This document shows, one piece after another, positions 11,401-51,065 of a stretch of DNA of 64,000 nt. Source of the DNA: Podarcis tiliguerta. Its lineage: Eukaryota. Location: assembly GCA_965153285.1 (NCBI GenBank), contig OZ229117.1; one strand, 5' to 3'. The first letter of the stretch is position 1; each line of letters starts with the position of its first letter. A program made the translations under genes and the position numbers. Below the pieces are notes generated by a model, which was not told the origin of the DNA, did not search any database, and worked only from the letters and a program-made list of their open reading frames with translations.

Positions 11401-14400
11401 GGTCGGGTGGAGGAGGCTATTCTGACCTGCTCCTTCCTCCTTCACTCTTTCCCAGGCCAGCAGAAGGATGGGGTTGCCAGCTCAGGCCTGCTGCATGGCT
11501 GGGTCTCATTCTGAAGGCACCCCCTTTTGTCCAGGCCTTCCCATTGCTCTGAGCCCATGGGAAGGGAGCTGAGCTTCCCGGCTCCCCACCCTGGCTCTGC
11601 CCAGCTCTTGACCACACCTGGCCTTTCTGCAGCAGGAACGAACAGTCCTGGAAACAGCATTGGAAGCCCTTCCTCTGATCCAGATGGGGCTCCTGTTGGG
11701 AAGCTCCACCATGGAGGAATCCACAGTAACTGTGGTGTCTCCTGTGCTCAGCACCACCCTCAGCAGGTACCAGTCTCCTCTCTCCTAGGCACTGAAGAAG
11801 GGGGGGGGGCTTGCTCAGGGCAGCTGGGGAACTGAATGAATTGTTTGGTTGCCAATTACCTATTGGAATCCTTTTGGTACGCAGAGTAAGACATTGTTCA
11901 GAGAATGCATTTTGGTTAGGGGACAGACTTTTATGAGTTACAATCTCACACACAGGGATGTTTGTAGTTAAGATAAATAATAAAGGAGTCTATTACATTA
12001 TTTTTAAAATTATTACTACATTTATAACCCACTTTTTCTCCAAAAAGCTCAGGATAGCTCACATTCTCCTTTTTTCCATCTTATTCTCATAACAACCCTG
12101 CGAGGTAGGTTGGGGCTGAGAGATAGTGACTGGCCCAAAGTCACCCATTGGGTTTCATGGCTGAGAGGGGATTTGAACCCTGGTCTCCCACGTCCATGTC
12201 TCACACTCTAACCACATAGTTGGATAGAAAAGTTCTAGCCTAACAAGTCTAGCCTAACAAGTCTGTACTAGAGCATGGTAGCCATGCTGGCTCCTGTCTT
12301 ATCTGAGAGGATAATTCTTCTTGGAGAGAGAAATGTGAGAAGGAGCAGGAAGTTGTGAAACAGAGTGCAGCCTGAGAATATCAAAAGAGAAAGAGAGGTG
12401 AGCTGAAGAGGTTAATGACACAAAGGTAGTCTGGGAATCTGGAGGTCTCGAACTCTGTTCTATCTGTCCTAACCTACGCAAGACCCCTCTTCTGAAAATG
12501 GAGTTGCACTCAAACTTTCAACAGTAACCCCTCTCCCCACTCCCTACCAGGTGTGACAAAGCCTCCCTGCCCCATGCCTCCTTCCACCTGCTTCAGCCAA
12601 GGGGCCTGAACGTAACCTTCCCATCCAGCTCTGCTCTGGAGCCAGTTCTGAGCCAGCACCCTCAAGTACAAGTCCAGGTAAGGTGGTAGTGGCTTGCTGT
12701 CCGCTGGGTCCTTGTAGGGGGACATAGTGCAGGGCTGGCAGGGCGTGGAGGTGGGGCAGAGGGCACCCCCACAGCTTGCTCTTGCTCTCATCTTCACTCT
12801 AGGTGGCCTCCTTTGCATTCAATCCTTTCCGGCACCTGGATGGGAAGCCGATCAAAAGGATGGCAAGTATCGCTCTCATGGCCAGCGAAGAGTCCATCGG
12901 TGTCCACAATCTTGCAGAGGAAATAGAGGTGAGAATGGATACTGTACTGGAAAGTTCTCTCATCAGGGGGACTCTTCTCTCAGCACCCAAGTGGCATGGA
13001 GAAGCAGCGCTGTCCAAGGTCCAGCTCTGGATCAGAGATAAGCACTTTGTGCTGTATGGCCTGATGGGAGACAATATGTGCTCAAGGACCAGTGGGGGGA
13101 CGGACGGACTGCAGGGCTGACCATAGGCATTCTGTCTACTTCCAGATTGGGCTCAGTGCTGAGGCTAGTGCTGAGGCCCCTCACACTCACTTGACTGGCA
13201 ACGTCAGGAACTTTGACATTGTGGTAAACATCACATCAGTAGAGGATGCCTTGCTAGTATCGGTGGAATCCAGCACAGTGGTCCAGATCACCTTGCACCT
13301 GGGCCTCCAACCTGAGCCCAACAAGAACAGCAGCCTCCTCAACACCACCCTGCCCAGCAGTGGATGGCAAGAGGGTGAGGACTTGTTAGAAGGAAGCTAG
13401 AGGGCAGGTGCTGCTTTGGGACTTCCTATTGGAGCACCTGACTGACCTCTAGGAGAATAGTGCTGGACTAGAATGGCCATTGGCCTGATGCAGCAGGTTC
13501 TTCTTATGCTCGTACATACAACACAATGCTGCATGTATCCCCTTAAAAGTAAGTCTCATTGGAGTTCAGTGAAGTAACTCTCAGGTAAGTGGGCATAGCT
13601 TTGAGGTGTTAACTTCACCGGCTGTTCTGGGTTTCAGCCATAAGACATGACCTGTATGGCAGACTTCCTCAAGCTCGACCCTCCAGATGTTTTGAGACTA
13701 CAATTCCCATCATCCCTGACCACTGGTCCTGCTAGCTAGGGATCATGGGAGTTGTAGGCCAAAAACATCTGGAGGGCTGAGTTTAAGGAAGCCTGCTATA
13801 TGGGAACAATTTACCTCTATAAATAGGGAAAGTTGCAAAAGTATACAGATTGAATCAGCTGTGTTTCAATTATTTAATTGCCCATTAAATTCATTTAATT
13901 GCAAATTAACATGGTGTAGTGGTCAGATTTGCACTGTGGGAAACATCCACGGGAAATTTGATTTAAATCGCTTAGTTAAATCAGCCCGTTTCTTCATGTA
14001 CATAATTGACCAAACCACTTTGATTTAAATCTGTGCACCTGGGAGTAGGCACAGAGGGAGGGGCTTGAGGAGGTGGGGCCAGGCAGGACTGTGTCCCCAG
14101 TGGGGGAAGGTGTGGGTGAGGTCAGTGGGTGTGGTCCCTCTCTGCTCTCTTTGACTCACTGCTCTTGCTTCAGAGGGTACCTACACATGGGTGATTCCTC
14201 CAGAGGAGCTGCAGCATCATGGCCTGGGCACCTACTACATCTCTGCAGAGGTGGCTCCCCTCTCTCAGGGCCCCTGGAACCTCTCCATTCACACCATCAT
14301 CTCTGGATGCTACTACTGGTCCAGCCAGCATCAGGCCTGGAGAAGTGATGGATGCCGGGTATGCAGTAGGGTCAACCAGGCCAGAGGGCTGCAGGGCAGG

Positions 14401-17400: not shown

Positions 17401-20400
17401 TGCCGTGGCTCACAGCCCCCAAGGCAGAGCCCTGAAGGGTCCTGTATTTTTGCTCCTGTCCCCATGCTCCACCTTCCATGCATAGGGCTTGTGTGTCTCT
17501 AAGTAGCAATGAGGATTCTAAGCTTCACAATGGAGCTGGGAGTCCCCCTCTGCACCCCGCCCAGCATTTTTGGCATCAAAACTGCCTCAGCCACAGCAGT
17601 GATCCTTTCAGCCACCCCCTCCTCCTGACTGAAGGTCTCTGTCTGCCCCTCCTCTGCCCAGTGTGGTGTAGTGGTTAAGAGCGGTAGTCTCGTAATCTGG
17701 GGAACCGGGTTCGCGTCACCGCTCCTCCACATGCAGCTGCTGGGTGACCTTGGGCCAGTCACACTTCTCTGAAGTCTCTCAGCCCCACTCACCTCACAGA
17801 GTGTTTGTTGTGGGGGAGGAAGGGAAAGGAGAATGTTAGCCGCTTTGAGACTCCTTAAAGGGAGTGAAAGGCGGGATATCAAATCCAAACTCCTCCTCCT
17901 CCTCCTCCTCCCCCCCCTCGCTCCCGAGACAGGGCCTTTTATGGTGACTTGGCACGAGCTGCTGGTGAGTGTGGAAACAGCCATCTTCCTAATGCCAGTG
18001 AGCCTACTGATCAGCCACATCTTCCAGCTGGTCCAGCCCCCAGCCCCAAAGCCTCCGGCTACCAGCCCTGAACTCCTGCAGACTGTGATGCCTCCCAAGC
18101 AGGTGATGCCCATCACACGAGTCAAGCAGGTGAGACCCCCTCCTGACAAGTCCCTCCAGTCAGCAAGAGGTCCTGAGCGGTCAGTCTCCCAGCACCAGCC
18201 TCTGCCCTGATGGGTGCTTGGCACTCTTGCCCTGCTCTCTCCATTGCAGGAGCTGGAGGAGACCCTGGGCTTCCTCTACAAGAACAGCCTCTGCCAGTGC
18301 AGAGCCATGGACAAGTTCCCTGGGACTTCTGAGCAAGTACCAGAGCTTGTGTCTGCTCTGTGTGACCTCATTGAGTCCTACCTCCAGCACCAGAAGGACC
18401 TGGAAGGTCCCCCTCAGGGTAAGAGTAGCTTGTCTTGGCAACGGATGCGAACACCACTCCCTTCCTCTCAGACAGAGAGTGTGCCACCCTTCCTCATGCT
18501 CTGTGCACCAGTTTGTACCTTTGGGGGGCTGAGCAACCCTTGACTCAATTGGAAAGAGGGGGGGGAATTAAGGCTCTGTAGGGTGAGAGTGATGCCTCTT
18601 TGTACTTGTTTCCAGAGAGGCGCTTCAACCTCCACAGCTACCTGAGCCATGTGCTGAATGACTTGGGGACTCAGCTCCGCAGCCTGGATTTGTGCAGCTT
18701 TCCTAACCCCTATGACCATCTGCATGCAGTGGACCAACTACGGAGAGTCCAGCAGCACCTAGAGCAGCAGCAGGCCCAGCCCTGGCCCAGCCCTGAGGGG
18801 CCTGGCAGGTAGCCCCCATCTGGAAGCTCCCCTCATCTATCTCTTCCCCACTCTCCTGGCCCCATTTCCGGGTAACATTATGCAGAGATTGCTCCAAACC
18901 CAAAATAGTACTTGGGGAACAAGTTCCTCATTTGTAAGCTGCTGTGTGGCATCTACTGTACACACCCTACATATGTATACAAAGAAACACACCTAGCTAA
19001 GGCCAAAGTTCCTTCCATGAAATAGCTTGCAGGAAGAAACTAACCAGATGTCTTCACACTCCAGGGAATGCCTTCAGGGGCTGGGCGAGGAGGCAGGTCC
19101 TAGTTGCAGGAGATAGAAGCTGCCCCCCCCCCCAGGACTCACCAGTGAGGATGGGGGTCGCATATGCAGCAGAGTGCTCAAATGTCACCCAGAAACAGAG
19201 TGAGGCAACAGTCCAAGGTCACCACCGCAGTCGAGTTCAGGCAAGGTACAATGCAGCAAGGCAGGGCGATGAGAATCAGGAAATAAGGCACCAGAGACCT
19301 GTATTATTTCCTGCAACTAGAAGGCTCACTAGGGAGGCTTTATATGATACTCTTGTCTCCTAAACTACACTCATCCACAGCCACTGACTGCTTCCTCGCA
19401 AGCAGACTGCTGCCTCTGATTCCAGAGACTGGCAGGGGGAGCTGTTCCACCCCCTGTTCTGACAGTTCCAGGAGTTTTTCATCAGGTACTAACCTGGAGG
19501 GCCCCTGGATCTATAGGGTATCTGGTTCATCTTCAGAGGACTCTGTGTCTGGTCCCGTGTCACACTCAGACCCAAAGCCAGCCAGTTTTCCCAGCCCACC
19601 CAATAATGGTCTTTTTCTTAACTGCCTATTGCTTTTTCTGCTTGGTCTGTGGGACATTTGCCCTCCCCACTGCACAGTTCCCTCCCTCCACTGGTGTTCC
19701 CAAAAGCTGAGGTGCCATTTATTCTCCTGTCTCTGTGTCTCAGGCCCACCGGGCCCAGGAGCGAGCTCAGCAGTTTCCCACTTGAAGACCCTGAGAAGGA
19801 GAGGCCGCCGTTCTCCCACTGTCTCCCCGGGAGATTCAGCTTCGCCTGCTGGCTCACAGTGGGGAGCACCAGCTTGGTTTCGGCCTTCTTCACAGTGCTC
19901 TACAGCCTAGAAATGAGCAGGGACGAAGCTGGGCACTGGGCCATCAACATCCTGCTCTCAGTGCTACAGAACATCTTTGTAATGCAGCCCCTGAAGGTAA
20001 CTTGGTCCTACCTGGGGTGCAGTTAACCTCTCCCCACACCCTTGCCAGAGCCAGCATCTCCCCTCTTCTCCCTGCCTCTACAAATGTCTTTGGTGTTCTG
20101 TGATTCTGCAGCAACCCAGCAAGGTCAGAGGTCTGCAAGGATCCTCAGACCCCACATAAGTCCAGACTGGGTTTAATGCTTGTCCATCTCTCCCCCAATC
20201 TGCACCAGTAATGTGTGTAATGTTACTAACCATTCCATTTGTGGTGGGGCCTCTCTTGCATATTCTGCTAAGAGGGGCCCCAGACACCTGCCCTGTGGGG
20301 CCCCCCAATGGCAACCCTGTTCTCTCTCCTTCCCAGGCGTTGGCTCTGACCTTCCTCTTCTCACTGCTGCACAAGAGGGAGTTGTGGAAGGACAAGGGGC

Positions 20401-23400: not shown

Positions 23401-25243
23401 CATCAGCTTTAGCCAGCACTTTCAAGGTGCCTACGGTTAGTGGGAGGTATCAGCCAGCACCAGCTCAGGGGAGCTGAGATGTGGAACCTGCGGGGGCCCT
23501 CTGGGTGCTGCTAGGCTCCCATCATTCCTGACCACTGGCCATTGGCTGCCTAGAGCAGTTGGGCATTTGGATTCCAGCAACACCTGGAGTGCCGCAGGAG
23601 TGTCATCCCACCCTTGTTTTAGGGCAGTGTTTCTCAAACTTGGGTCCCCAGATGTTGTTGGACTACAACTCCCATCATCCCTGAGCCTTGCTAGCTAGGG
23701 ATGGGAGTTGTAGACCAAAAACAAATGGGGACCCAAGGTTGAGAAAAAGGCTGTTTTAGGGGGGGGTGGTGTGTGGAGATTGCTGTATTGCCAGAGAAAA
23801 AGCATCACACCACCACTGCTCCTTCCACTTGCATTCCCCCCCCCCCAACATGTGGCTGCCTGAGTCAAGCCTGCTTCTTCCATGGGGCCAGCAGGGCCGG
23901 CAGTTGAAGCAGCAGAAGTGGAAGTACTTCAGCAGCAAGAGAAACCTGCTGGATGCCAGCACCATCCTCATAAGTGTGGCAGCTATTGGCCTTTATGTGA
24001 AGAGGCGTGTGCTGGCAGAAGGCATCCTGAAGCAGCATCGCCAAGACCGCAACAAGTGAGTGTCTACCATCCGAAACAAGGGGCAGGGGCAGACCTCCAC
24101 TCAGCAGAGGCAACTTTCACACACCCTAAAGCAAAACTCCCTCCATACCTCTGGCAGGTTCATCAGCTTCTATGAGATGGTGGAAGTTGACTCTGCGCTG
24201 ACATACCTCATTGCTTTTCTGGTGGCCTTGACAACCATCAAGCTGTGGAACCTCCTGCGCCTAAATCCCAGAATGCACCTCATCACACAGACACTGCAGA
24301 AAGCCTGGGATGAGGTCCTGGGCTTCCTGCTCACACTTCTGGTGCTGCTTGTGGGTTATGCCATTGTGGTAAGAAGAGACCTGTCAACTGCAGGGAAACC
24401 AACCAAGGGCGGAGAGAAGACCCCTCCCCCTTCCTGTGTCCTTATACCCCTCCCCCTACATCACCTTCACTCTCTTGCCATCAGTGCAACCTCATGTTTG
24501 GATGGAGCGTAGATGACTACAAGACCTTCTTTAACTCAGCTGTGACCATCGTAGGGCTTCTCATTGGAATCTTTAATTATGAAGAGGTGAGTGCCATGCA
24601 GCCCCACTTTAGGCCGAGGCACACTGCCAGGCTGCCCTTCCAGGACACCACAGATCACAGCAGACCCCCAGCCCCATTCAGCTCCCAGCTCAGCACCCAG
24701 AGAGACCTGCATGGATTTCAGCTTTCTGGGTCTAGAATGCCAATGCTTCCCTGTGCCCTGCAAAGCACAGCACGGCCAACAGCTCTCTGCTATGTGCATA
24801 TGTAGACACAGGGGACATAACTGTGCTCTTCATGCTTAGGTCATTGCTGTGGACCCCGTGTTTGGCGCTGTGCTGATTGTAACCAGCGTCATCTCCATGG
24901 TGTTCGTGATCATCAACCTGTTTGTCTCTGCCCTTTTGACGACCTTCAGTCGGGAGATGAAGGCTGCCAAGGTAGGTGTAAGCCCAAGCGGCTGGTGCTG
25001 CTCATCACCCGCCACCAGCCAAGCTTCAAGCAATTAAGCCTTCATGAGAAGCTGCTTATGCCGCAGCCACCCCTCAGGATCTGAGTTCACATATAAGGCA
25101 TCTCTCTCTCTCCCGGTTCATCACAACAGGCCAGCAAGGAGGAATCCATGTTGCAGCTGATTCAACTGAAGATTTCCACCTTGTTTGGAATCAAGAAACA
25201 GCCGCCCTTCCCAGCAGCTTCCCGAAAGGAGCCACAGGACTGA
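8440..25243 (+). CDS. PKD1L3: Polycystin-1-like 3, full length, about 1772 aa, 31 coding exons
   Basis: Exons: 8440-8728, 9376-9465, 9764-9804, 9957-10388, 10866-10997, 11211-11375, 11633-11766, 12551-12677, 12803-12928, 13146-13374, 14174-14358, 14534-14764, 15083-15184, 15506-15684, 16486-16632, 17073-17266, 17933-18129, 18250-18418, 18616-18808, 19744-19996, 20337-20439, 20568-20711, 21620-21805, 22244-22535, 22896-23029, 23202-23326, 23895-24055, 24158-24368, 24485-24586, 24840-24971, 25130-25243; total 5319 nt, in frame. Domains: signal peptide, C-type lectin, S/T/P stalk, GPS (CLCNHL/TFFG), PLAT (FERG, WHDN.G.NPSW), TM1-5, TOP domain (RLRQIR, WLDKSTR..FIEF..YNANVNLF) and channel TMs. 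Sits next to IST1 as in mammals. Confidence 0.9.
12017..12215 (-). mobile_element. tRNA-derived SINE (Squam3/MIR-like), reverse orientation
   Basis: CAACCCTGCGAGGTAGG..GACTGGCCCAAAGTCACCCA..GATTTGAACCC (reverse B box)..TCTAACCAC (reverse A box). Confidence 0.65.
13660..13795. mobile_element. hAT-type MITE, near-palindromic
   Basis: Long TIRs CAGACTTCCTCAAGCTCGACCCTCCAGATGTTTT ... AAAACATCTGGAGGGCTGAGTTTAAGGAAGCCTG; 8-bp TSD CTGTATGG / CTATATGG (7/8). Confidence 0.85.
17656..17910 (+). mobile_element. Young tRNA-derived SINE (Squam3-like) with (CCT)n tail
   Basis: A box GGTGTAGTGG, B box GGGTTCG, L2-type 3' end (TAGCCGCTTTGAG..AAAGGCGGGATATC) and CTC repeats; CpGs retained. Confidence 0.8.
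19183..19564 (-). mobile_element. Possible degenerate LTR-like insertion in a PKD1L3 intron
   Basis: TGTCA...TGTCACA ends and a minus-strand ATATAAAG near 19340; no convincing TSD. Confidence 0.3.
21191..21471. mobile_element. CpG-rich non-autonomous DNA-transposon-like insertion
   Basis: GC/CpG-rich island in an AT-richer intron; ends GGGGCGGC ... GCTACGCCCG; flanks ACCATACC / GTCATACC (6/8). Confidence 0.45.
23625..23753. mobile_element. hAT-type MITE
   Basis: TIRs CAGTGTTTCTCAAACTTGGGTCCCCA ... TGGGGACCCAAGGTTGAGAAAAAGGCTG; perfect 8-bp TSD TTTTAGGG on both sides. Confidence 0.9.
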
Positions 25244-27548: not shown

Positions 27549-30500
27549 TTAAGTTTTCTTCTTCAGTTCCTCAAACCTTCGAGAGAGGTCATCGAAGTCA
27601 ATGTCTTCTGAGGCGGAAGTGTTGGCACCAGCAGAAGCGGCAGGCAGCGTGTCTGGCACAGATGGCAACTCTGGCAGCACAAAATTATCGCCCGTACTAG
27701 GAACTGCAGCTGGTGGCCTCCCCCTCGGCTGTGGCTTTGGGGCTGGTCCTGCAGCAGACAAGAGTGACTGGTTACAAGCAGTGGGCAGGCTCAAGGCAGT
27801 GAAAACAGTAGTCTACCTAACAGGAGTAGGGGCAGGGGTAGGACCATTCTTCTTTTTGCTGGACTACCGTTAGTATATGTCCTGTAGAAGCAAGCACTTG
27901 CTGCACTTCAGTTGAGCCTTGCAGCTCCTACCAGTTACTACATGGGTCCAAGCTTGAAGAGACCCAGTCTCTGCCCCCAAAACACACACACACACTCTCT
28001 TACCTCAGCAACTCAAGAGCAAACACAAGTGAAGGGGACCAACAATAAACACAAGCACCAGCTTTCCCCTGACATCACCACCTCCCTCCCTCCCTCCTCA
28101 CTGCCTTGCCAGCTCCAGAGCCTCTCCCTCCGGCCCTGCACTCACCGGTCACCTGTGGCGATGGCAATTCCTTGTCAGCACCCATGTCATCAATCTGAAA
28201 CAAAAAAAAAGCTGGCTTTGCATGGAGCGCCCCACATAGAACCACCACCTGACAACTCCCTAGAGGCCTACATGCACAGCAGAAGCACCATATCTGGTGT
28301 TCCCATCTTCTTCATGCAGCCTGGCCAGACAGCAGAAGGAAGGATGAAATGAGGGATCTGGAGGAGGAGGAAGCAGTGGTGGTGAGCCTGGCCTGGTGGC
28401 ACCATAGGTGAGGGAGAGCCATTCAGCATGGCTGCCTACCTGAATAGGAAGCGGCCCTGGCTATGTCCCCTAAGGATGGCCTGACGGTGCAGTAGCTCTT
28501 CACCATCGCTGGTGGTCTCACCTTCAACCTGACATGAACCACCACCACCAGCAACCACAGAAGTCTGGAGAGCAGCAGCTGAACAAGCGCAAGTGCATGA
28601 AGGTGGACACATCCCCATTTCCACACTCTCTAGCTGCTCAACCCACCCCCACATCTCGTCCTCTGCTCATGCCTCCCATGGGCAGCAGCCTGGACTCTGA
28701 GACCAAGGTGACCTCTGAGTCACTGCCTGCAAGCTCATCCAGGCTGCTGAGATCATGCTGAGGCTCCCTCAGTATCATTATCACAGCCCCTCCCTCCTGC
28801 CTGGTAGACTCAAGTAGCTGCCCTGCTCGCTCCCCTCAGTGGCTGCCTCCTCCACCACCACATCGTCAACCAAGGTGCGGCTGAAGAAGCTGGAGCAGCT
28901 CCTGGTGGACAGGCTGCAGGGCTACTGCTGGACCTCCTGGTCGGCCTCTATACCAAGTGTAGTTTCCACTCACTGCTTCAGAGGGACAGGCTTGTCTTGG
29001 ACTTCCTCAAGTGGGAATGGGACTCCTGATTATTGAAAGTGACCTGGGCAAGTTTCTCCTCAACAATGCCTAGGCAGGCAACATCCACCTTACCACTGGC
29101 GGTAGGCCTAAGGCCTAAGAGCCCCATCATCTCCACCATCTCTACTCAAGGACCCCAGCCAGTGCAACATCTGGCATTATGTGCATATATGTGTATTATA
29201 AGGAACTGAACAGAGTGAAAAATTATGAGTCATGGGGGTACAGAGACATGACTTGCCGTAATAGTGAGGTTTAGCTTATTTTTTAGTTGCTGTTTTCTTA
29301 AGATTTTTATAGATTGCCACTGTTTTATTGATGTTTTATTGATAATTTGTTGATTATTTTATATGATGTATGCTGTATTTGCGACATGCTAGTATGTTTT
29401 ATTATGTTATGGCTATTTATTGTTTGTAAGCTGCTTTGAGATGAAAAGCAACATAGAATGAATGAATGAAAAGCCAACATAGAAATGCAATAAATCAAAA
29501 TCATATCAAAGGTGCATGAAGTTTGCTGCAAGCTCAATCCAGTGGATGGCAACTCCTCAGTCAGTCCAAGTGGGGAGGCCTGCCAATACCCAGCACTAGA
29601 CTAGGGACAGCAACAGTCCCAGCAGAGAGGACTTGCCCTCCCAGCAATTCAGCTTTTGTTTTTCATCAGCAGTACTTACAGACTCATATGTTGGAGGTGT
29701 TGCTGGAATCTGAGGTGGATGAAGGCTGGTGAAAGGCTGGTAGGTGCCCACTGGTAGCCCGTTGAAGTGCTCCTAAAGGGAGAAATTGTTAAGTCAGACC
29801 AGCACCCCTTTCTAATGGCAGAATCAGATAGGAAATACCTGCCAGAACAGCTGGAAAACCTTGTTCACACAGCAGGTAGTGAGGTGTGCTCAGATGCTAA
29901 CTCACCACAGTAGACTGCTATCCTTTCCTCCCCCCACTACCACCCCCAATCCCAACTTTACAGACTCCCCTCCTGTTTCAAGCAAGACATAGGACTTACT
30001 GGTCCCTTTGGAGGTGGGTATGCAAAAGGGGGAGCTGGAGACGGCATGGGCATGGGCATTGGCATTGGCACAACTCCATCAGGACCAGCCATTGGGGTCA
30101 TGAAGCCGCCGCCGCCACCACCTCCACGGCCACCTTTCTTTGTATCATCCACGAATCCCACATCAATCAGGTCAGCTTCCACGCCTGCGGGAGCCTCAGC
30201 CTGGGAAGAGGAAGAAGCTGATGTCACATGTGGGAAAGGGAGCTGCTACTGAGGGAATTGAGAGTGGAACCGCCTCCCAGTCACTCACCATGACAACAGA
30301 GTCTGGCTCATAGGGCACGTTGTAGTTCTTTGCGATCTCAATCAGGTACCGCTCCACTAGGATTTTGGGAGGTGCCTCTACGCTCAACTTGTGCATCAGC
30401 TGGAAGGGAGGGAGGGAAGAGTGAGCCCTTCACCTAGCTAAGAGATATCCAAGCCAGAAAAAAGATAAGTTTCTACCTTGCCTGGTGAAGCACCACAGGC

Positions 30501-32341
30501 AGGACCACCTGCTGCAAGCAACTCATCTTTATGAAGCACTGATATCGTTCCCTCCCATAAGAACAGCCTGCTGGATCAGCCTGTCTAGCCCAGCATCCTG
30601 TCCTCACACTGGCCAAACAGATGCCCCAACAAGAAGCCCCTGAGTGGAGCAGCAGCAGTGCTCTCCTTCACCTGCGATTCCCAACAACTGACATCAGGAG
30701 CAGATCACTTCTGACAGCAGAGGAAGACGTAGCCATTGTGGTTAGTAGCTCCTGAGAGCCTTACCGCCATCTCACCCCCATGATGCCCTTCCCATTCCAC
30801 TCACCCTGTCATTGACGGTCCCAATCTGGTTGCTCCGGCACAACTTGCCATACTCTTTGCTGTACTTGGCACAGAGCTGGTCAGCAACCTAGTATGGAAA
30901 TGGCACACTCAAAACAGAGTCCAGGCACCACTGGCTCCCCTCTATTTAAGACAGGGCACAGCAACTATCGCAGCACCCCTGGACAAAAGGTTCAGGAGTT
31001 TGGAGACTGGAGCCAACCTAAACTCCCAGATCAAACAAGAAAGTCACCAAGTTCTCTGAGCATCCTGTGAGGATAGATCAAAGTGTTTTCCCAACTGCTG
31101 CCCCCAGATGTCCAGGAAGGCTGAGCAGCCTGCCAAGACACAACTGGCACTACTCACCATTTTCAGCTCAGCCACCTCCGCTTGCAGTCGGGGGGCAGCC
31201 CAGATGAGTGTGGAGACAGCTTCTGCCAGGCCGGAGTCCAGCTCCCTGAAGGGACACAAAGTAAGGCAAGAGTGAGCAAGTAGTTGAAAGACAAGGAGGA
31301 CAAAGAGGTCCCAGACCTAGCAGACCGAGGGGAGGGGACACGTGGCAGGCACCCAGCACCCTCTTCCCCATAGGCCAAGACCTTACTTCATAGATTGTAT
31401 GAGGCCAAAGCGTGCCAGAAGCAAGTCACAGTAGAGCTCCAGGATCTCCATTGCCTCCACCAAGTAGTCCTCCCGGATGATGTGCTCCACACGGATGCGA
31501 GCCCGCTCATCTTTGCCAGCAGACAGGTAGTCAGCAATTTCCTTCCGTGCCTTCTGGGCTAGCTCAGCTGCAAGAAAAGGGTTCATCATGGGGCAGCAGG
31601 GGAGGCCCAGAAGCCTGCCCTGGCCCTGCCTGGGGTGTTTGTGTATGCAAAGAGAGGGGCTCCACCAAGAAGGACTGTGGGTTGTCTCCAACTAAGTTAT
31701 ACTTAGGCATATTGAAATTAAGTAACCATGTCCATTCAATGAGTATAGTGGGGCTAGAACTGGACACAAGTCCACAAACCTGAGAACTCTTCACAGAATC
31801 CACACCCCCATCCCAATGACCACAATTCTCAGCATCTTTGAAATACAGTACACACACACACACACACACACAAGCAATTCCACACTTACACTCTGACATG
31901 TCAAAATAAATTTAAACAATTCTTTTAAAAGATAGTTAAAAATACTCTTCTTAAAAACCTAAAAACTCCCTTTAAAAAATCAAGTCTTCAAAAAAGTTAT
32001 ACGATCTAAGAAAGTCTTGAAGAGAATCCTTCCAAAAGAATTTAAAAATTATAATGTAGCACCTTAGAGACCAACTGAGTAGTATAAGCTTTCGTGTGCA
32101 TGCACACTTCTTCAGATACACTGAAACAACATGTGCAGGCTATAAATTAAGCATCTCTTAATTTATAGCCTGCACATGGTGTTGTGGGACACCATGACTA
32201 CCATCACTACTCTGGTGATGAGGTCAAGGAATTAGGTAGAAAAGTCCACTCACTTTTCTTTTTCTCCAACAGTTTGAGGCGATTGATGACAAGACGTAGG
32301 TTGACTCGCAAGCGCTCGGCCTTGAACCCAGAGCCTAACAT
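27549..32341 (-). CDS. IST1: IST1 ESCRT-III-associated factor, 364 aa, 9 coding exons
   Basis: Exons (minus): 32341-32254, 31567-31387, 31245-31158, 30888-30805, 30399-30289, 30200-30000, 29772-29680, 28194-28146, 27748-27549; total 1095 nt. Starts MLGSGFKAERLRVNLRL; contains ELYC, PMPMPMP, MIM2 LPELPSVP and the terminal MIM1 DFDDLSRRFEELKKKT. Confidence 0.97.
28428..28527 (+). pseudogene. Decayed copy of the IMPDH1 (or IMPDH2) start-codon exon
   Basis: Reads MAAYL/IGSGPGYVP/KDGLTVQ*LFTIAGGLTF-AA (two +1 frameshifts, one stop), versus recalled IMPDH1 [33 protein letters not shown]. Preceded by CAGC; stops after the AA of the Asn codon. Confidence 0.85.
28528..28609 (+). pseudogene. Decayed copy of USP7 exon 1
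   Basis: CCTGAC-ATG, then MNHHHQQPQKSGEQQLNKRKCMKVD+1 nt, versus recalled USP7 [26 protein letters not shown](A). Confidence 0.85.
28665..28772 (+). pseudogene. Decayed copy of the 3' part of cyclin L (CCNL2-like) exon 1
   Basis: Reads MPPMGSSLDSETK/DL*VTACKLIQAAEIMLRLPQ, versus recalled CCNL2 [35 protein letters not shown]. Confidence 0.85.
28862..29015 (+). pseudogene. Decayed copy of CDC42BPB (MRCK-beta) exon 1 coding part
   Basis: Reads STKVRLKKLEQLLVD../LLDLLVGLYTKCSFHSLLQRDRLVLDFLKW+G, versus recalled MSAKVRLKKLEQLLLDG...[30 protein letters not shown](A). Confidence 0.88.
29270..29470 (+). mobile_element. LINE-like (L2-type) AT-rich 3' tail ending in (AATG)n
   Basis: T-rich stretch, then TGTAAGCTGCTTTGAG..AAAAGC, then GAATGAATGAATGAA; similar to the 3' motif of the SINE at 17.8 kb. 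Confidence 0.5.
32056..32128. mobile_element. Penelope-like element fragment
   Basis: GTAGCACCTTAGAGACCAACT..ATAAGCTTTCGTGTGCATGCACACTTCTTCAGATAC; shares sequence with 32672-32884. Confidence 0.55.
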
Positions 32342-32671: not shown

Positions 32672-32884
32672 TCTAGATTCGGGTAGGTAGCTGTGTTGGT
32701 CTGACGCAGTCGAAATAAAATAAAAAAATTGTCCAGGAGCACCTTAGAGACCAGCTAAGTTTGTTCTGGGTATAAGGTTTCGTAGGTATCTGAAGAAGTG
32801 TGCATGTGTACGAAAGCTTATACCCAGAACAAACTTAGGTAGCCTCTAAAGTGCTACTGGACATTTTTTAAATTAATCAAATTA
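32672..32884. mobile_element. Penelope-like inverted-repeat insertion
   Basis: Inverted arms 32731-32784 / 32809-32862, flanked by the direct repeat TTTTTTGCATGGT (32659-32671 and 32885-32897). Confidence 0.7.
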
Positions 32885-33276: not shown

Positions 33277-33599
33277 TCTGTATGTATGTGTAGAGCACTT
33301 TCATCTGTGCAAGCAACAGATTTCTGTCCCCCCCCCCCCTTTTGTACATGATTTGATCAGCCAGGCCCAACCATATACAGCACAAGGGGCAGCTCACAAC
33401 CTTGGATCTCTTTAACCAGTTTCAATCCCTGGAGGACAAACCTGCCCCGCTTTTCAGCACTGGAAGCGGTAGAGAGCTCAGCTCCCACCTATGTGGGAGC
33501 TGGTGGAGGATTTGCTCCAAGAGGGTGGGGGAGTTTGCAGGTAGTTGAACTACAGAGGCACGAAGGCAATTCCCAACTCTTCTTCCGGCAACGGCTTCG

Positions 33600-35330
33600 C
33601 TTTCGGCTAGACACAGGCAGCTGCCCGCTCCGGGTTCAGAGACCCCAAAGGCGAAACACCAGCGCCGCCCGACCCGTAGCCTGCCAGTTTCGATGTGCTA
33701 CAGGCCCCAAGGAGGAGCCATTCCAGGCCAGCGGCAGGAGCAAGAGCCGGAAGGGAAGGCGAGCGACCAGGCTGGGCAGAGGCCAAGCCCTCCAGCCGCG
33801 GACCAGGAAGCGCCGCTTCTTCGCCCGCGCCTCTCGCCACCGGCTGGCCGAAGGCAGCTTCAGGCGGCGGCCCCTCCGGGCCTCTCTCGCCTTTCCCGGG
33901 GCCCTTCCCTGCCTCGGTCCGTTCCTCGGGCGAAAGGCGACCGGGAAGGCGGGGGAGGCTTGTGAGGGCGGCGGGAAGCAGGACCTCGAGTCGTCCAAGG
34001 AGGGCAACGGCCCCGCTCCCCGGAAAACGCAGAGCCGAGCGAGGGCGGTCAGCCGGGGCGGCCTTACCCGGGGGCGGTCTTTTTGTCTCCGTCTGTCCCG
34101 GCAGGCAGCGAAGGTGGCGTCGGCGGCGTCACGGATCCAGCCTCAGCTGGGCAGGCGGAGGGATACGTCTCTTCTCTGCTTTTCAGGAGGAGGTGCGCGA
34201 CAGCGACAGTAGCAAAAGCAATAGTCGTAGTTCTTAGCAGCGTCCGGCCCTCTGTCTGCGACGCGGCTTCTCCAAGATACAGTGCAGCGACGCACGGGGC
34301 GCTTTGTGTTTGTACGGAACTACTTTACGGGCGGAGGGATCTTTCGCCGGAGAAAGAGGGACCTCAATAAAAGTCGTACTTCCTAAAACAAGCGTTACCT
34401 TCATTGAGGTCCCTCCATAGCCCTCAACCGCGGCTGGAGAGTTCCGGCCTCGTCGGGTACGACGTCGGAGAAGGAGGAGGAAGAGGTGGCGGCCCCGCCC
34501 ACTGCCCCCCTCCCTCCGAGCTGCTTCCCATCCCCGGGGGCGTCGCGCGGCAGACTGGAGCCCTCCCGCTGTAGGGGCGCTCGCGTGAATGGCCGGGCGC
34601 CTTGCAGGACATGGCGGGGGCGTCAATCGAGTCCCCCTGCTCGTGGCTTGAAAAGAGGCGGGGACGGCGGCAGCCCTGCCACTAGCACCGCGGCGGCGCC
34701 GCTCCGACAAGAGGAGAAGCGTCCCCGTGGAAGGAGGCGACTCGGGGCAAGGGAGGCGGGTTGCAGCAGCAGCAGTTGCTCCTGCTCCTCCTCCTCCTCG
34801 GTAGCCGGGCCCGTGGAGAGCGCCGAAGGACACAACTCTGGCCCTGCTGGCTGGTCTGGGTGCGTGAAGCCCCCGGAGGCGCCGGCCTGATGGCTGCGGG
34901 ACCGCCTCCCGGCTGAGCGCCTGCGCCGGCCTCGGGATCGGCGCCCCTGCTGCCAGGCAGGAGGCGCGCTCCGCTCAGAGGGGAGGGCTCCAGCGCCGCG
35001 CGCCCCCGTCCGCCTGTCTGTCCGTCGGTCCCGCCGTGCACGAGCCGGGCGCTCCCGCCGTGCCGCCATCTTCCTCTGTCTGTCTGTCTGCCAGCCCGGG
35101 CGGCCCTTTGTCCTCCTGCAGCGCTGCTGGGCGAGCCCAGGCCGGGCGACGGAGTCAGGTAAGGGCCGAGGCGGCGGCAGCCTCCTTTCGAGCGCGGGGT
35201 GGGGGCTGATCTCTAAATGCCCCCCGCTCGCCTACCCTGGTCATCCCCCGCATGGTGACAGGGCTCTTCTTTCCGCAGGTGCGCCCCCCCCGGGGGGGGA
35301 ACCATGTCCCGTCGGAAACAGACCACCCCC
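33600..35330. promoter_or_regulatory. CpG island; divergent promoter of IST1 and ZNF821
   Basis: Very high GC and CpG content. Minus-strand donor at 34398 (putative IST1 5' UTR exon) and plus-strand donor CAG|GTAAGG at 35158 (ZNF821 5' UTR exon). Confidence 0.85.
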
Positions 35331-50019: not shown

Positions 50020-50398
50020 AATAATCATAATAATAATTTATTATTTATACCCCGCCCATCTGGCTGGACCTCCCCAGCCACTCTGGGCGGCTTCCATAGA
50101 AACCAAAAATACAGTAAAATATCACACGTTAAAAACTTCCCTGAACAGGGCTGCCTTAAGATGTCTTCTGAATGTCAGGTAGTTGTTTATCGCTTTGACA
50201 TCTGCTGGAAGGGCGTTCCACAGGGTGGGCGCCACTACTGAGAAGGCCCTCTGCCTGGTTCCCTGTAGCTTTGCTTCTCGCAATGAGGGAACTGCCAGAA
50301 GACCCTTGGTGCTGGACCTCAGCGTCCGGGCAGAACGATGGGGGTGGAGACACTCCTTCAGGTATACTGGACCGAGGCCGTTTAGGGCTTTAAAGGTG
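50020..50398 (-). mobile_element. L2-type LINE 3' fragment
   Basis: (TAA)n tail followed by TTTATACCCCGCCCATCTGGCTGG..CTCTGGGCGGCTT..CAGGGCTGCCTT; a shorter related copy lies at about 52180-52282. Confidence 0.7.
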
Positions 50399-51065
50399 AG
50401 CTTTAGGACAGCCTTGCATGTAACAACTCACCTGGTAGTCATAGGCAACCAGAAATTCCATCCTGGTGAGTGAATGCCACATTAGACAGATAGCTATCAG
50501 AGCATTTCTTACTAAACATCTGTTTACCAGAGATTATTTTTAAAATGTCATAGAGGCACTTGTGGTATGTTGGCTACTCTGGAAGGTTGTGATTCACTAA
50601 GAAGCTCTTCCAAAGCGTCTTAGTAGAAGTTAGATCATGAGTACTTCTGGATTCTAGATCCTAACTGGGAGCTTTGGATGGAAACTCAAGCTGACTCATG
50701 AAACATGGAAGGAGCTGGCTCGCTGTGGGTCGTGTGCTTGCTCTGATCCACCAGGATCCTCCTGTGTAATTATGGCAACAGCTTCCTTTCCTAAGGAATC
50801 CACACAAATTTGGCAGTAAGTGGGTTGGAAGGCACGAGATGGAACAAGACTCTCTAGCAGGCATGGGTCTACCCTGGTTAGCACTTGGGAAAAGGGAAAT
50901 AATTCTGCTTCTCTGTCGCCAGAAGATCAGACCTGGAAGTCTGGTCAGTCTCCATTATCCTGCAACACCTGCAGTTTGTGCTGTGGTTTATTTTCCATAA
51001 ACCACCTTGGATACTCTGTGGAGGGACATAAATAATCTAATAACATGCATGAAGGAATAATGGCA

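Follow-up and report, generated by a model that had tools for sequence, protein, structure and literature searches.

Within a 64,000-nucleotide stretch of Podarcis tiliguerta DNA (NCBI GenBank assembly GCA_965153285.1, contig OZ229117.1), referred to here as the window, an intron of the IST1 gene carries four decayed N-terminal coding pieces in a row, attributed to IMPDH, USP7, cyclin L and CDC42BPB (MRCK-beta) and all read from the plus strand in a three-frame translation of positions 28200-29260. The array is genuine and cannot be put down to chance: 5′ exon pieces of several genes have been brought together in one chimera. We propose, as a reading that falls a little short of probable, that it is one dead copy of an RNA-derived (retroposed) chimera in which exons were linked through their splice donors, repeated exon trapping being the likeliest route. 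A preliminary description of this DNA had placed the modules on the plus strand, antisense to IST1, at coordinates that prove correct to within 1-3 bases, and the translation bears out the strand for all of them. The array, the sequence 5′ of it and its presumed carrier are made up as follows.

28212-28427, plus strand: GC-rich stretch 5′ of the IMPDH module; 216 bases, CpG observed/expected ratio 0.06, without PDB or Pfam match.
28428-28528, plus strand: IMPDH N-terminal coding module, from ATG to ...GGLTFN; two frameshifts and two in-frame stops, the three frames being read by eye.
28529-28611, plus strand: USP7 module; 5 bases, CTGAC, then ATG and MNHHHQQPQKSGEQQLNKRKCMKVDT; PDB match to residues 1-25.
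28612-28772, plus strand: cyclin L (L2-like) module; 3′ part of the first coding exon, no start codon; PDB match to residues 82-101.
28773-28861, plus strand: 89-base spacer, which may be CDC42BPB 5′ untranslated region (5′UTR) or filler.
28862-29015, plus strand: N-terminal module of CDC42BPB (MRCK-beta), approximately residues 1-60; frameshifted once, with ATC in place of the original ATG; last residues ...FLKW.
29016-29230, plus strand: 215 bases from array to tail, presumably the carrier body.
29231-29510, plus strand: AT-rich (30% GC) retroposon-type 3′ tail with a TGTAAGCTGCTTTGAG motif, a (GAAT)n run and a 28-base tandem duplication.

Identification of the parent genes

Parent genes were sought by PDB sequence searches covering 177,635 sequences. 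The strongest identification is that of CDC42BPB, where 28868-29017 aligned with MRCK-beta residues 28-58 at an E value of 6.8e-5, outranking MRCK-alpha and DMPK, and where, in another frame, SSTKVRLKKLEQLLVD aligned with MRCK-beta residues 3-18 (KVRLKKLEQLL) as the sole PDB matches. This parentage is confirmed, the match being significant alone. Homology running on into the kinase domain past 29015 had been suspected by eye and was dropped, as PDB and Pfam searches of 28963-29271 were blank and nothing from further along the MRCK kinase domain was detectable there; the same searches of the opposite flank, 28197-28408, were blank as well.

The USP7 piece (28534-28611) returned only two PDB matches, both to full-length USP7 at residues 1-25 (E 2.8), and the cyclin L piece (28719-28814) likewise only two, cyclin L2 and cyclin L1, at residues 82-101 and ending at LRLPQ (E 0.1-0.2). 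These matches are weak by E value but appear specific, lying at the N-terminal residues expected. The secure part of the cyclin L module is 28722-28772, CKLIQAAEIMLRLPQ, with its terminal cag, and the part upstream of it, PPMGSSLDSETKV, was read by eye only; altogether the piece corresponds to approximately the last 40 codons of the first coding exon, roughly the first 60 codons being missing. An 85-amino-acid read spanning the USP7 and cyclin L pieces had no PDB match. A search for homologous proteins was blank both for the chimeric USP7-cyclin L open reading frame and for the one in the CDC42BPB frame, which carries no weight because the collection does not include open reading frames of the window. 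The IMPDH module is spread across three frames as MAAYL / GSGPGYVP / KDGLTVQ*LFTIAGGLTFN, with stop-free pieces of fewer than 20 amino acids, and was identified by eye only; we take the peptide to be a vertebrate IMPDH N-terminus with transition-type changes, in which IMPDH1 and IMPDH2 are not separable.

Of the four parents named in the preliminary description, CDC42BPB is confirmed by the PDB searches, USP7 and cyclin L are the only PDB matches of their pieces, and IMPDH1 is retained by eye and as IMPDH. Its designation of the pieces as start-codon exons suits IMPDH and USP7, whose ATG is present, but not the cyclin L piece, which begins within the exon, nor CDC42BPB in its present state, where the codon has become ATC.

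Chance resemblance, or an artefact of assembly or of contamination by complementary DNA (cDNA), would draw on the weakness of the USP7, cyclin L and IMPDH identifications when each is taken by itself (E 0.1-2.8, or by eye). Such an explanation is nevertheless very improbable, as the MRCK-beta match is significant with no help from the others, USP7 and cyclin L are the sole PDB matches of their pieces in the whole set searched and are hit at the expected N-terminal residues, and the stretch lies within a correctly spliced IST1 gene model. Moreover, stops, frameshifts and strong CpG loss are not expected of contaminating cDNA, and these therefore argue for old genomic decay.

Age of the insertion

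The CpG observed/expected ratio is 0.15 in the array, as against 0.71 in the nearby IST1 CpG island, and the insertion is therefore old. Nothing suggests that this old, dead and decayed copy functions today. In 28428-29015 (plus strand) many of the departures from the parent proteins are E-to-K or other changes that read as G-to-A on the sense strand, at least 6 E-to-K changes being visible across the USP7, IMPDH and MRCK-beta pieces; this could be plain GC-to-AT decay or cDNA deamination.

Module ends, junctions and tail

In PDB alignments homology to cyclin L breaks off abruptly at ...LRLPQ (cag) and that to MRCK-beta at ...FL(E/K)W, and the parent proteins go on past both points. A GT follows none of the four module ends (0/4), intron-like sequence is likewise absent after them, and neither intron nor promoter DNA is detectable before or after the modules. 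All of the modules share one orientation and are fused without A-runs, repeats or recognisable filler. Those downstream of a junction have lost 5′ sequence, as represented by the 5-base leader of USP7 and by the loss of some 60 initial codons from cyclin L, and module sizes of about 80-240 bases resemble those of internal exons. Modules of such size, cut 5′, would result from the use of a cryptic acceptor lying upstream of a strong donor. It is because of these exon-end-like ends, the missing intron and promoter DNA, the 5′ cuts, the internal-exon sizes and the single orientation shared with a retroposon tail that we favour a scheme in which RNAs were joined and the product was then reverse-transcribed.

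The tail (29231-29510) places a 3′ end of the type found in short or long interspersed nuclear elements (SINEs, LINEs) downstream of the exons and on their strand, so that the array stands in sense orientation to it. Its TGTAAGCTGCTTTGAG motif is common to the SINE tails at 17834 and 50081, with 4 matches in the window versus 0.5 expected. The resulting layout, sense-oriented exons upstream of a carrier with a SINE-type tail motif and (GAAT)n, all on the plus strand, is that of the SVA type, recognition of the tail by a LINE enzyme being putative. Two ordinary squamate SINE-type retroposons occur in the window, at 17655-17900 (plus strand) and 50030-50400 (minus strand), and their 3′ ends have the AGCCGC..TGAG / GGCGG..ATA..AA motif of the tail.

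The presumed carrier body (29016-29230) gave no PDB, Pfam, Rfam or tRNA match and has no relative elsewhere in the window, and Rfam and tRNA scans of the IST1 intron gave nothing useful. A tail-like sequence at 28209-28243 was considered and set aside as not significant, 56 of 500 shuffles reaching its score. Upstream and downstream of the array there is a weak direct similarity (28240-28328 versus 29080-29162, plus strand), which is unconvincing given that 1.8% of control windows score as high. Just 3′ of the tail stand an exact 10-base match (29512-29521) to the USP7 piece (28593-28602) and an exact 11-base match (29526-29536) to the cyclin L piece (28727-28737), in the same order; this is marginal, being equalled in 4-6% of control windows.

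Search for other vehicles

An ordinary processed pseudogene is ruled out by the four parents, the restriction to 5′ exon pieces and the lack of poly(A), none being found between or after the modules, and on this the preliminary description was right. It had further suggested a Helitron or Pack-MULE as the vehicle, which the sequence around the array does not bear out. No Helitron ends (5′-TC; 3′ hairpin and CTRR; insertion between A and T) frame the array in a scan of both strands of 28100-29750, and there is no framing pair of terminal inverted repeats (TIRs) or of long terminal repeats. The only terminal inverted repeat (28195-28214 / 29650-29669) coincides with the splice regions of the intron: it is 20 bases long and 80% complementary, sits at both ends of the IST1 intron and consists of an A/T run overlapping the polypyrimidine tract, and is probably due to chance. 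A weak Helitron-like 3′ end at 29596-29625 (minus strand), formed by a 7-bp hairpin with one mismatch and then CTAG|T, lies outside the array and points away from it, and is probably also a chance occurrence.

A capture at the DNA level might still have come first, in that promoter and exon-1 fragments of several genes were gathered by a Helitron or by a TIR element such as a Pack-type hAT, the locus then being either the element itself or a retrocopy of its spliced read-through transcript. The components of such a history are known, as Helitrons are present in Anolis (PMC2997563), promoters and first exons have been captured by bat Helitrons (PMC4224331), and in plants captured fragments are spliced into new exon combinations (PMC1947982). 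Against it stand the lack of TIRs or of a hairpin-CTRR end about the array, the lack of intron or promoter DNA flanking the modules, the lack of a convincing target-site duplication (TSD), and a tail that is of retroposon type. Since this SINE/LINE-type tail lies on the same strand as modules with donor-like ends, an RNA route is to be preferred to DNA capture, which we regard as decidedly unlikely.

A model for the formation of the array

We propose a model in which a carrier RNA with a SINE/LINE-type 3′ tail would gain, at its 5′ end, first coding exons from genes that are unlinked and broadly expressed, each exon being joined via its own splice donor. A copy of the element would insert in sense orientation into the first intron of a gene, after which exon 1 of that host gene would be spliced to a cryptic acceptor in the 5′ part of the element, with loss of the start of any exon trapped earlier. 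A LINE enzyme would then reverse-transcribe the chimeric RNA and insert the copy, and a new round would begin. Under this scheme the CDC42BPB module, adjoining the carrier, would be the oldest capture and the IMPDH module, at the 5′ end, the newest. Four points in this scheme are inferences: the identity of the module ends with parental splice donors, splicing as the means of joining, the serial order of the captures, and the existence of further copies as a family. The earlier suggestion for this DNA, of a mobile element gathering 5′ exons one after another, is possible in RNA form.

The main rival to repeated exon trapping is a single-event, multi-template chimera, in which a LINE enzyme copies a tail-bearing RNA in one target-primed reverse transcription and then jumps at least 4 times to the 3′ ends of other RNAs, these being free 5′ exons after the first splicing step. 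Each module would then end at the natural 3′ end of its RNA, the donor, and would be 5′-truncated where the enzyme left it. The truncation pattern at the locus fits such jumps, one tail is present, and the geometry is like that of U6-L1 chimeras, with the upstream partner 3′-complete and the downstream partner 5′-truncated; tripartite chimeras from double jumps are documented (PMC2104539), and as no copy family is needed the rival also fits the finding of no second copy in the window. It would nevertheless require at least 5 templates in one event, which exceeds the documented cases, and would draw on free exon-1 intermediates that are rare and held in spliceosomes, whereas the known partners are abundant small RNAs. 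That first exons make up four of the four identified partners would need a special explanation, and neither a TSD pair nor poly(A) was found. We rank it as unlikely, though less so than DNA capture.

Repeated exon trapping, our preferred explanation, has evidence against it as well. No second copy of any part of the array or the carrier occurs in the window. No TSD was found, as no word of at least 9 bases recurs between the left edge and the sequence 3′ of the tail and the only shared 8-mer is inside the tail, although decay may have erased it; a clear 5′ boundary of the insertion was likewise not found. The carrier (29016-29510) is assigned to no named family, and no LINE is tied to its tail. 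The donor status of the module ends comes from the stops in homology and from general vertebrate gene structures, and not from the parent genes of the lizard. At least 4 successive captures would exceed the number that we find documented for SVA. Finally, a near-consensus donor at 28406-28415, AG|GTGAGG, may be the start of an intron that was retained, a feature not predicted for a chimera formed by splicing alone.

This donor-like sequence terminates an ATG-led open stretch at 28349-28415 (plus strand), MRDLEEEEAVVVSLAWWHH, and lies 13-22 bases 5′ of the IMPDH ATG. Neither PDB nor Pfam gave a match to the open stretch, which may represent IMPDH 5′UTR or else a further first-exon module, the fifth, together with the retained beginning of its intron. 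The GC-rich stretch that contains it (28212-28427) may be native intron, IMPDH 5′UTR, or at least one further non-coding module, and it may be partly native intron because an insertion starting at 28212 would leave only 17 bases to the IST1 acceptor.

A wider version of the model can be entertained as possible, if some way from probable, in which a squamate non-LTR retroposon lineage trapped the CpG-island first exons of germline-expressed genes by splicing, in at least 4 successive captures, each of them a portable promoter, and in which copies with nested subsets of the modules would be spread genome-wide.

The host intron and its surroundings

IST1 is a compact gene on the minus strand, its coding exons running from an ATG near 32338 to a stop at 27552. 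The insertion makes up most of one of its introns, which is the longest among the IST1 coding introns, the rest being shorter, and a 14-codon exon lies directly downstream of it in the IST1 sense.

28153-28194, minus strand: IST1 14-codon exon, IDDMGADKELPSPQ; acceptor cag at 28197-28195, donor gtgacc from 28152.
28195-29679, minus strand: IST1 host intron, 1,485 bases; donor gtaagt at 29679-29674, after the exon ending ...PATPPTYES.

A CpG island at 33400-34000, with 65-70% GC and the CpG ratio of 0.71 used above, lies about 1 kb upstream of the IST1 start-codon exon and presumably represents the IST1 promoter and a non-coding first exon. Elsewhere in the window there are hairpin-shaped elements resembling miniature inverted-repeat transposable elements, at 13655-13800, 23630-23746 and 32719-32874, with arms of 47-66 bases, two of which have the common core GGACTACAA(C/T)TCCCATCATCCCTGA.

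Significance and comparison with known systems

If serial exon trapping is the true history, the gain of first exons by splicing would be a general promoter route for non-autonomous retroposons and not a peculiarity of ape SVA elements, and the order of the modules would record the past landing sites of the element. If the squamate lineage reading holds, the element would be an independent reptilian counterpart of hominid SVA_F1 and pt_SVA_D6, with more serial captures than we find reported for SVA. Should the array instead have come from a single multi-jump event, it would be rare genomic evidence of a LINE reverse transcriptase sampling spliceosomal intermediates. Under either route it represents a clear case of 5′-biased, multi-parent retro-chimerism in a reptile.

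In the literature searched, no paper was found that connects IMPDH, USP7, cyclin L and CDC42BPB with a mobile element or that describes such arrays in squamates. The claim that no such system has been described thus holds for lizards within the literature searched, but not more widely, as there are close analogues in apes.

Capture by Helitrons and by Pack-TIR elements (Pack-MULE, Pack-hAT) is similar in that several unlinked gene fragments, often 5′ ends, come together in one mobile unit (PMC4224331, PMC8277862). Those units are however DNA copies, with introns or promoters and with defined termini (TIR plus TSD, or TC...hairpin-CTRR), none of which we found here. The U6/U3/5S-L1 and tripartite template-switch chimeras (PMC4476161, PMC2104539) share with the array a head-to-tail succession of unrelated RNAs, 3′-complete upstream and 5′-truncated downstream, but the known partners there are abundant small RNAs, in at most about three parts, in contrast to the at least 4 messenger RNA first exons of the array. 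Human L1 chimeras carry one or more sense first exons upstream of L1 that end exactly at splice donors, for which trans- or cis-splicing before retrotransposition has been proposed (TiMEstamp, bioRxiv 10.1101/2025.02.02.635956); they have one parent, an often near full-length L1 and clear TSDs with poly(A), whereas here several parents are concatenated on a short carrier.

The closest resemblance is to SVA_F1, with exon 1 of MAST2, and to the chimpanzee pt_SVA_D6, with exon 1 of STK40, in each of which a GC-rich first exon is spliced onto the element (PMC6139936; Hancks et al. 2009 and Damert et al. 2009, cited there). As in these, sense-oriented first-exon pieces stand 5′ of a non-autonomous carrier of non-LTR type, the GC-rich housekeeping or kinase exon of SVA ending at the 3′ end of exon 1. 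Many pt_SVA_D6 copies have additional exons from 8 other genes (PMC6139936), so that the addition of exons of other genes upstream, as in the array, is also found in some SVA copies. The array differs from SVA in its lizard host, in a tail of SINE/LINE type and not of poly-A/L1 type, in having four identified exon pieces in a row, and in being known here from one copy. The kind of event is thus one known from apes, in the trapping of first exons by SVA and L1, and what is new here is the run of four exon pieces, the different carrier and the lizard host.

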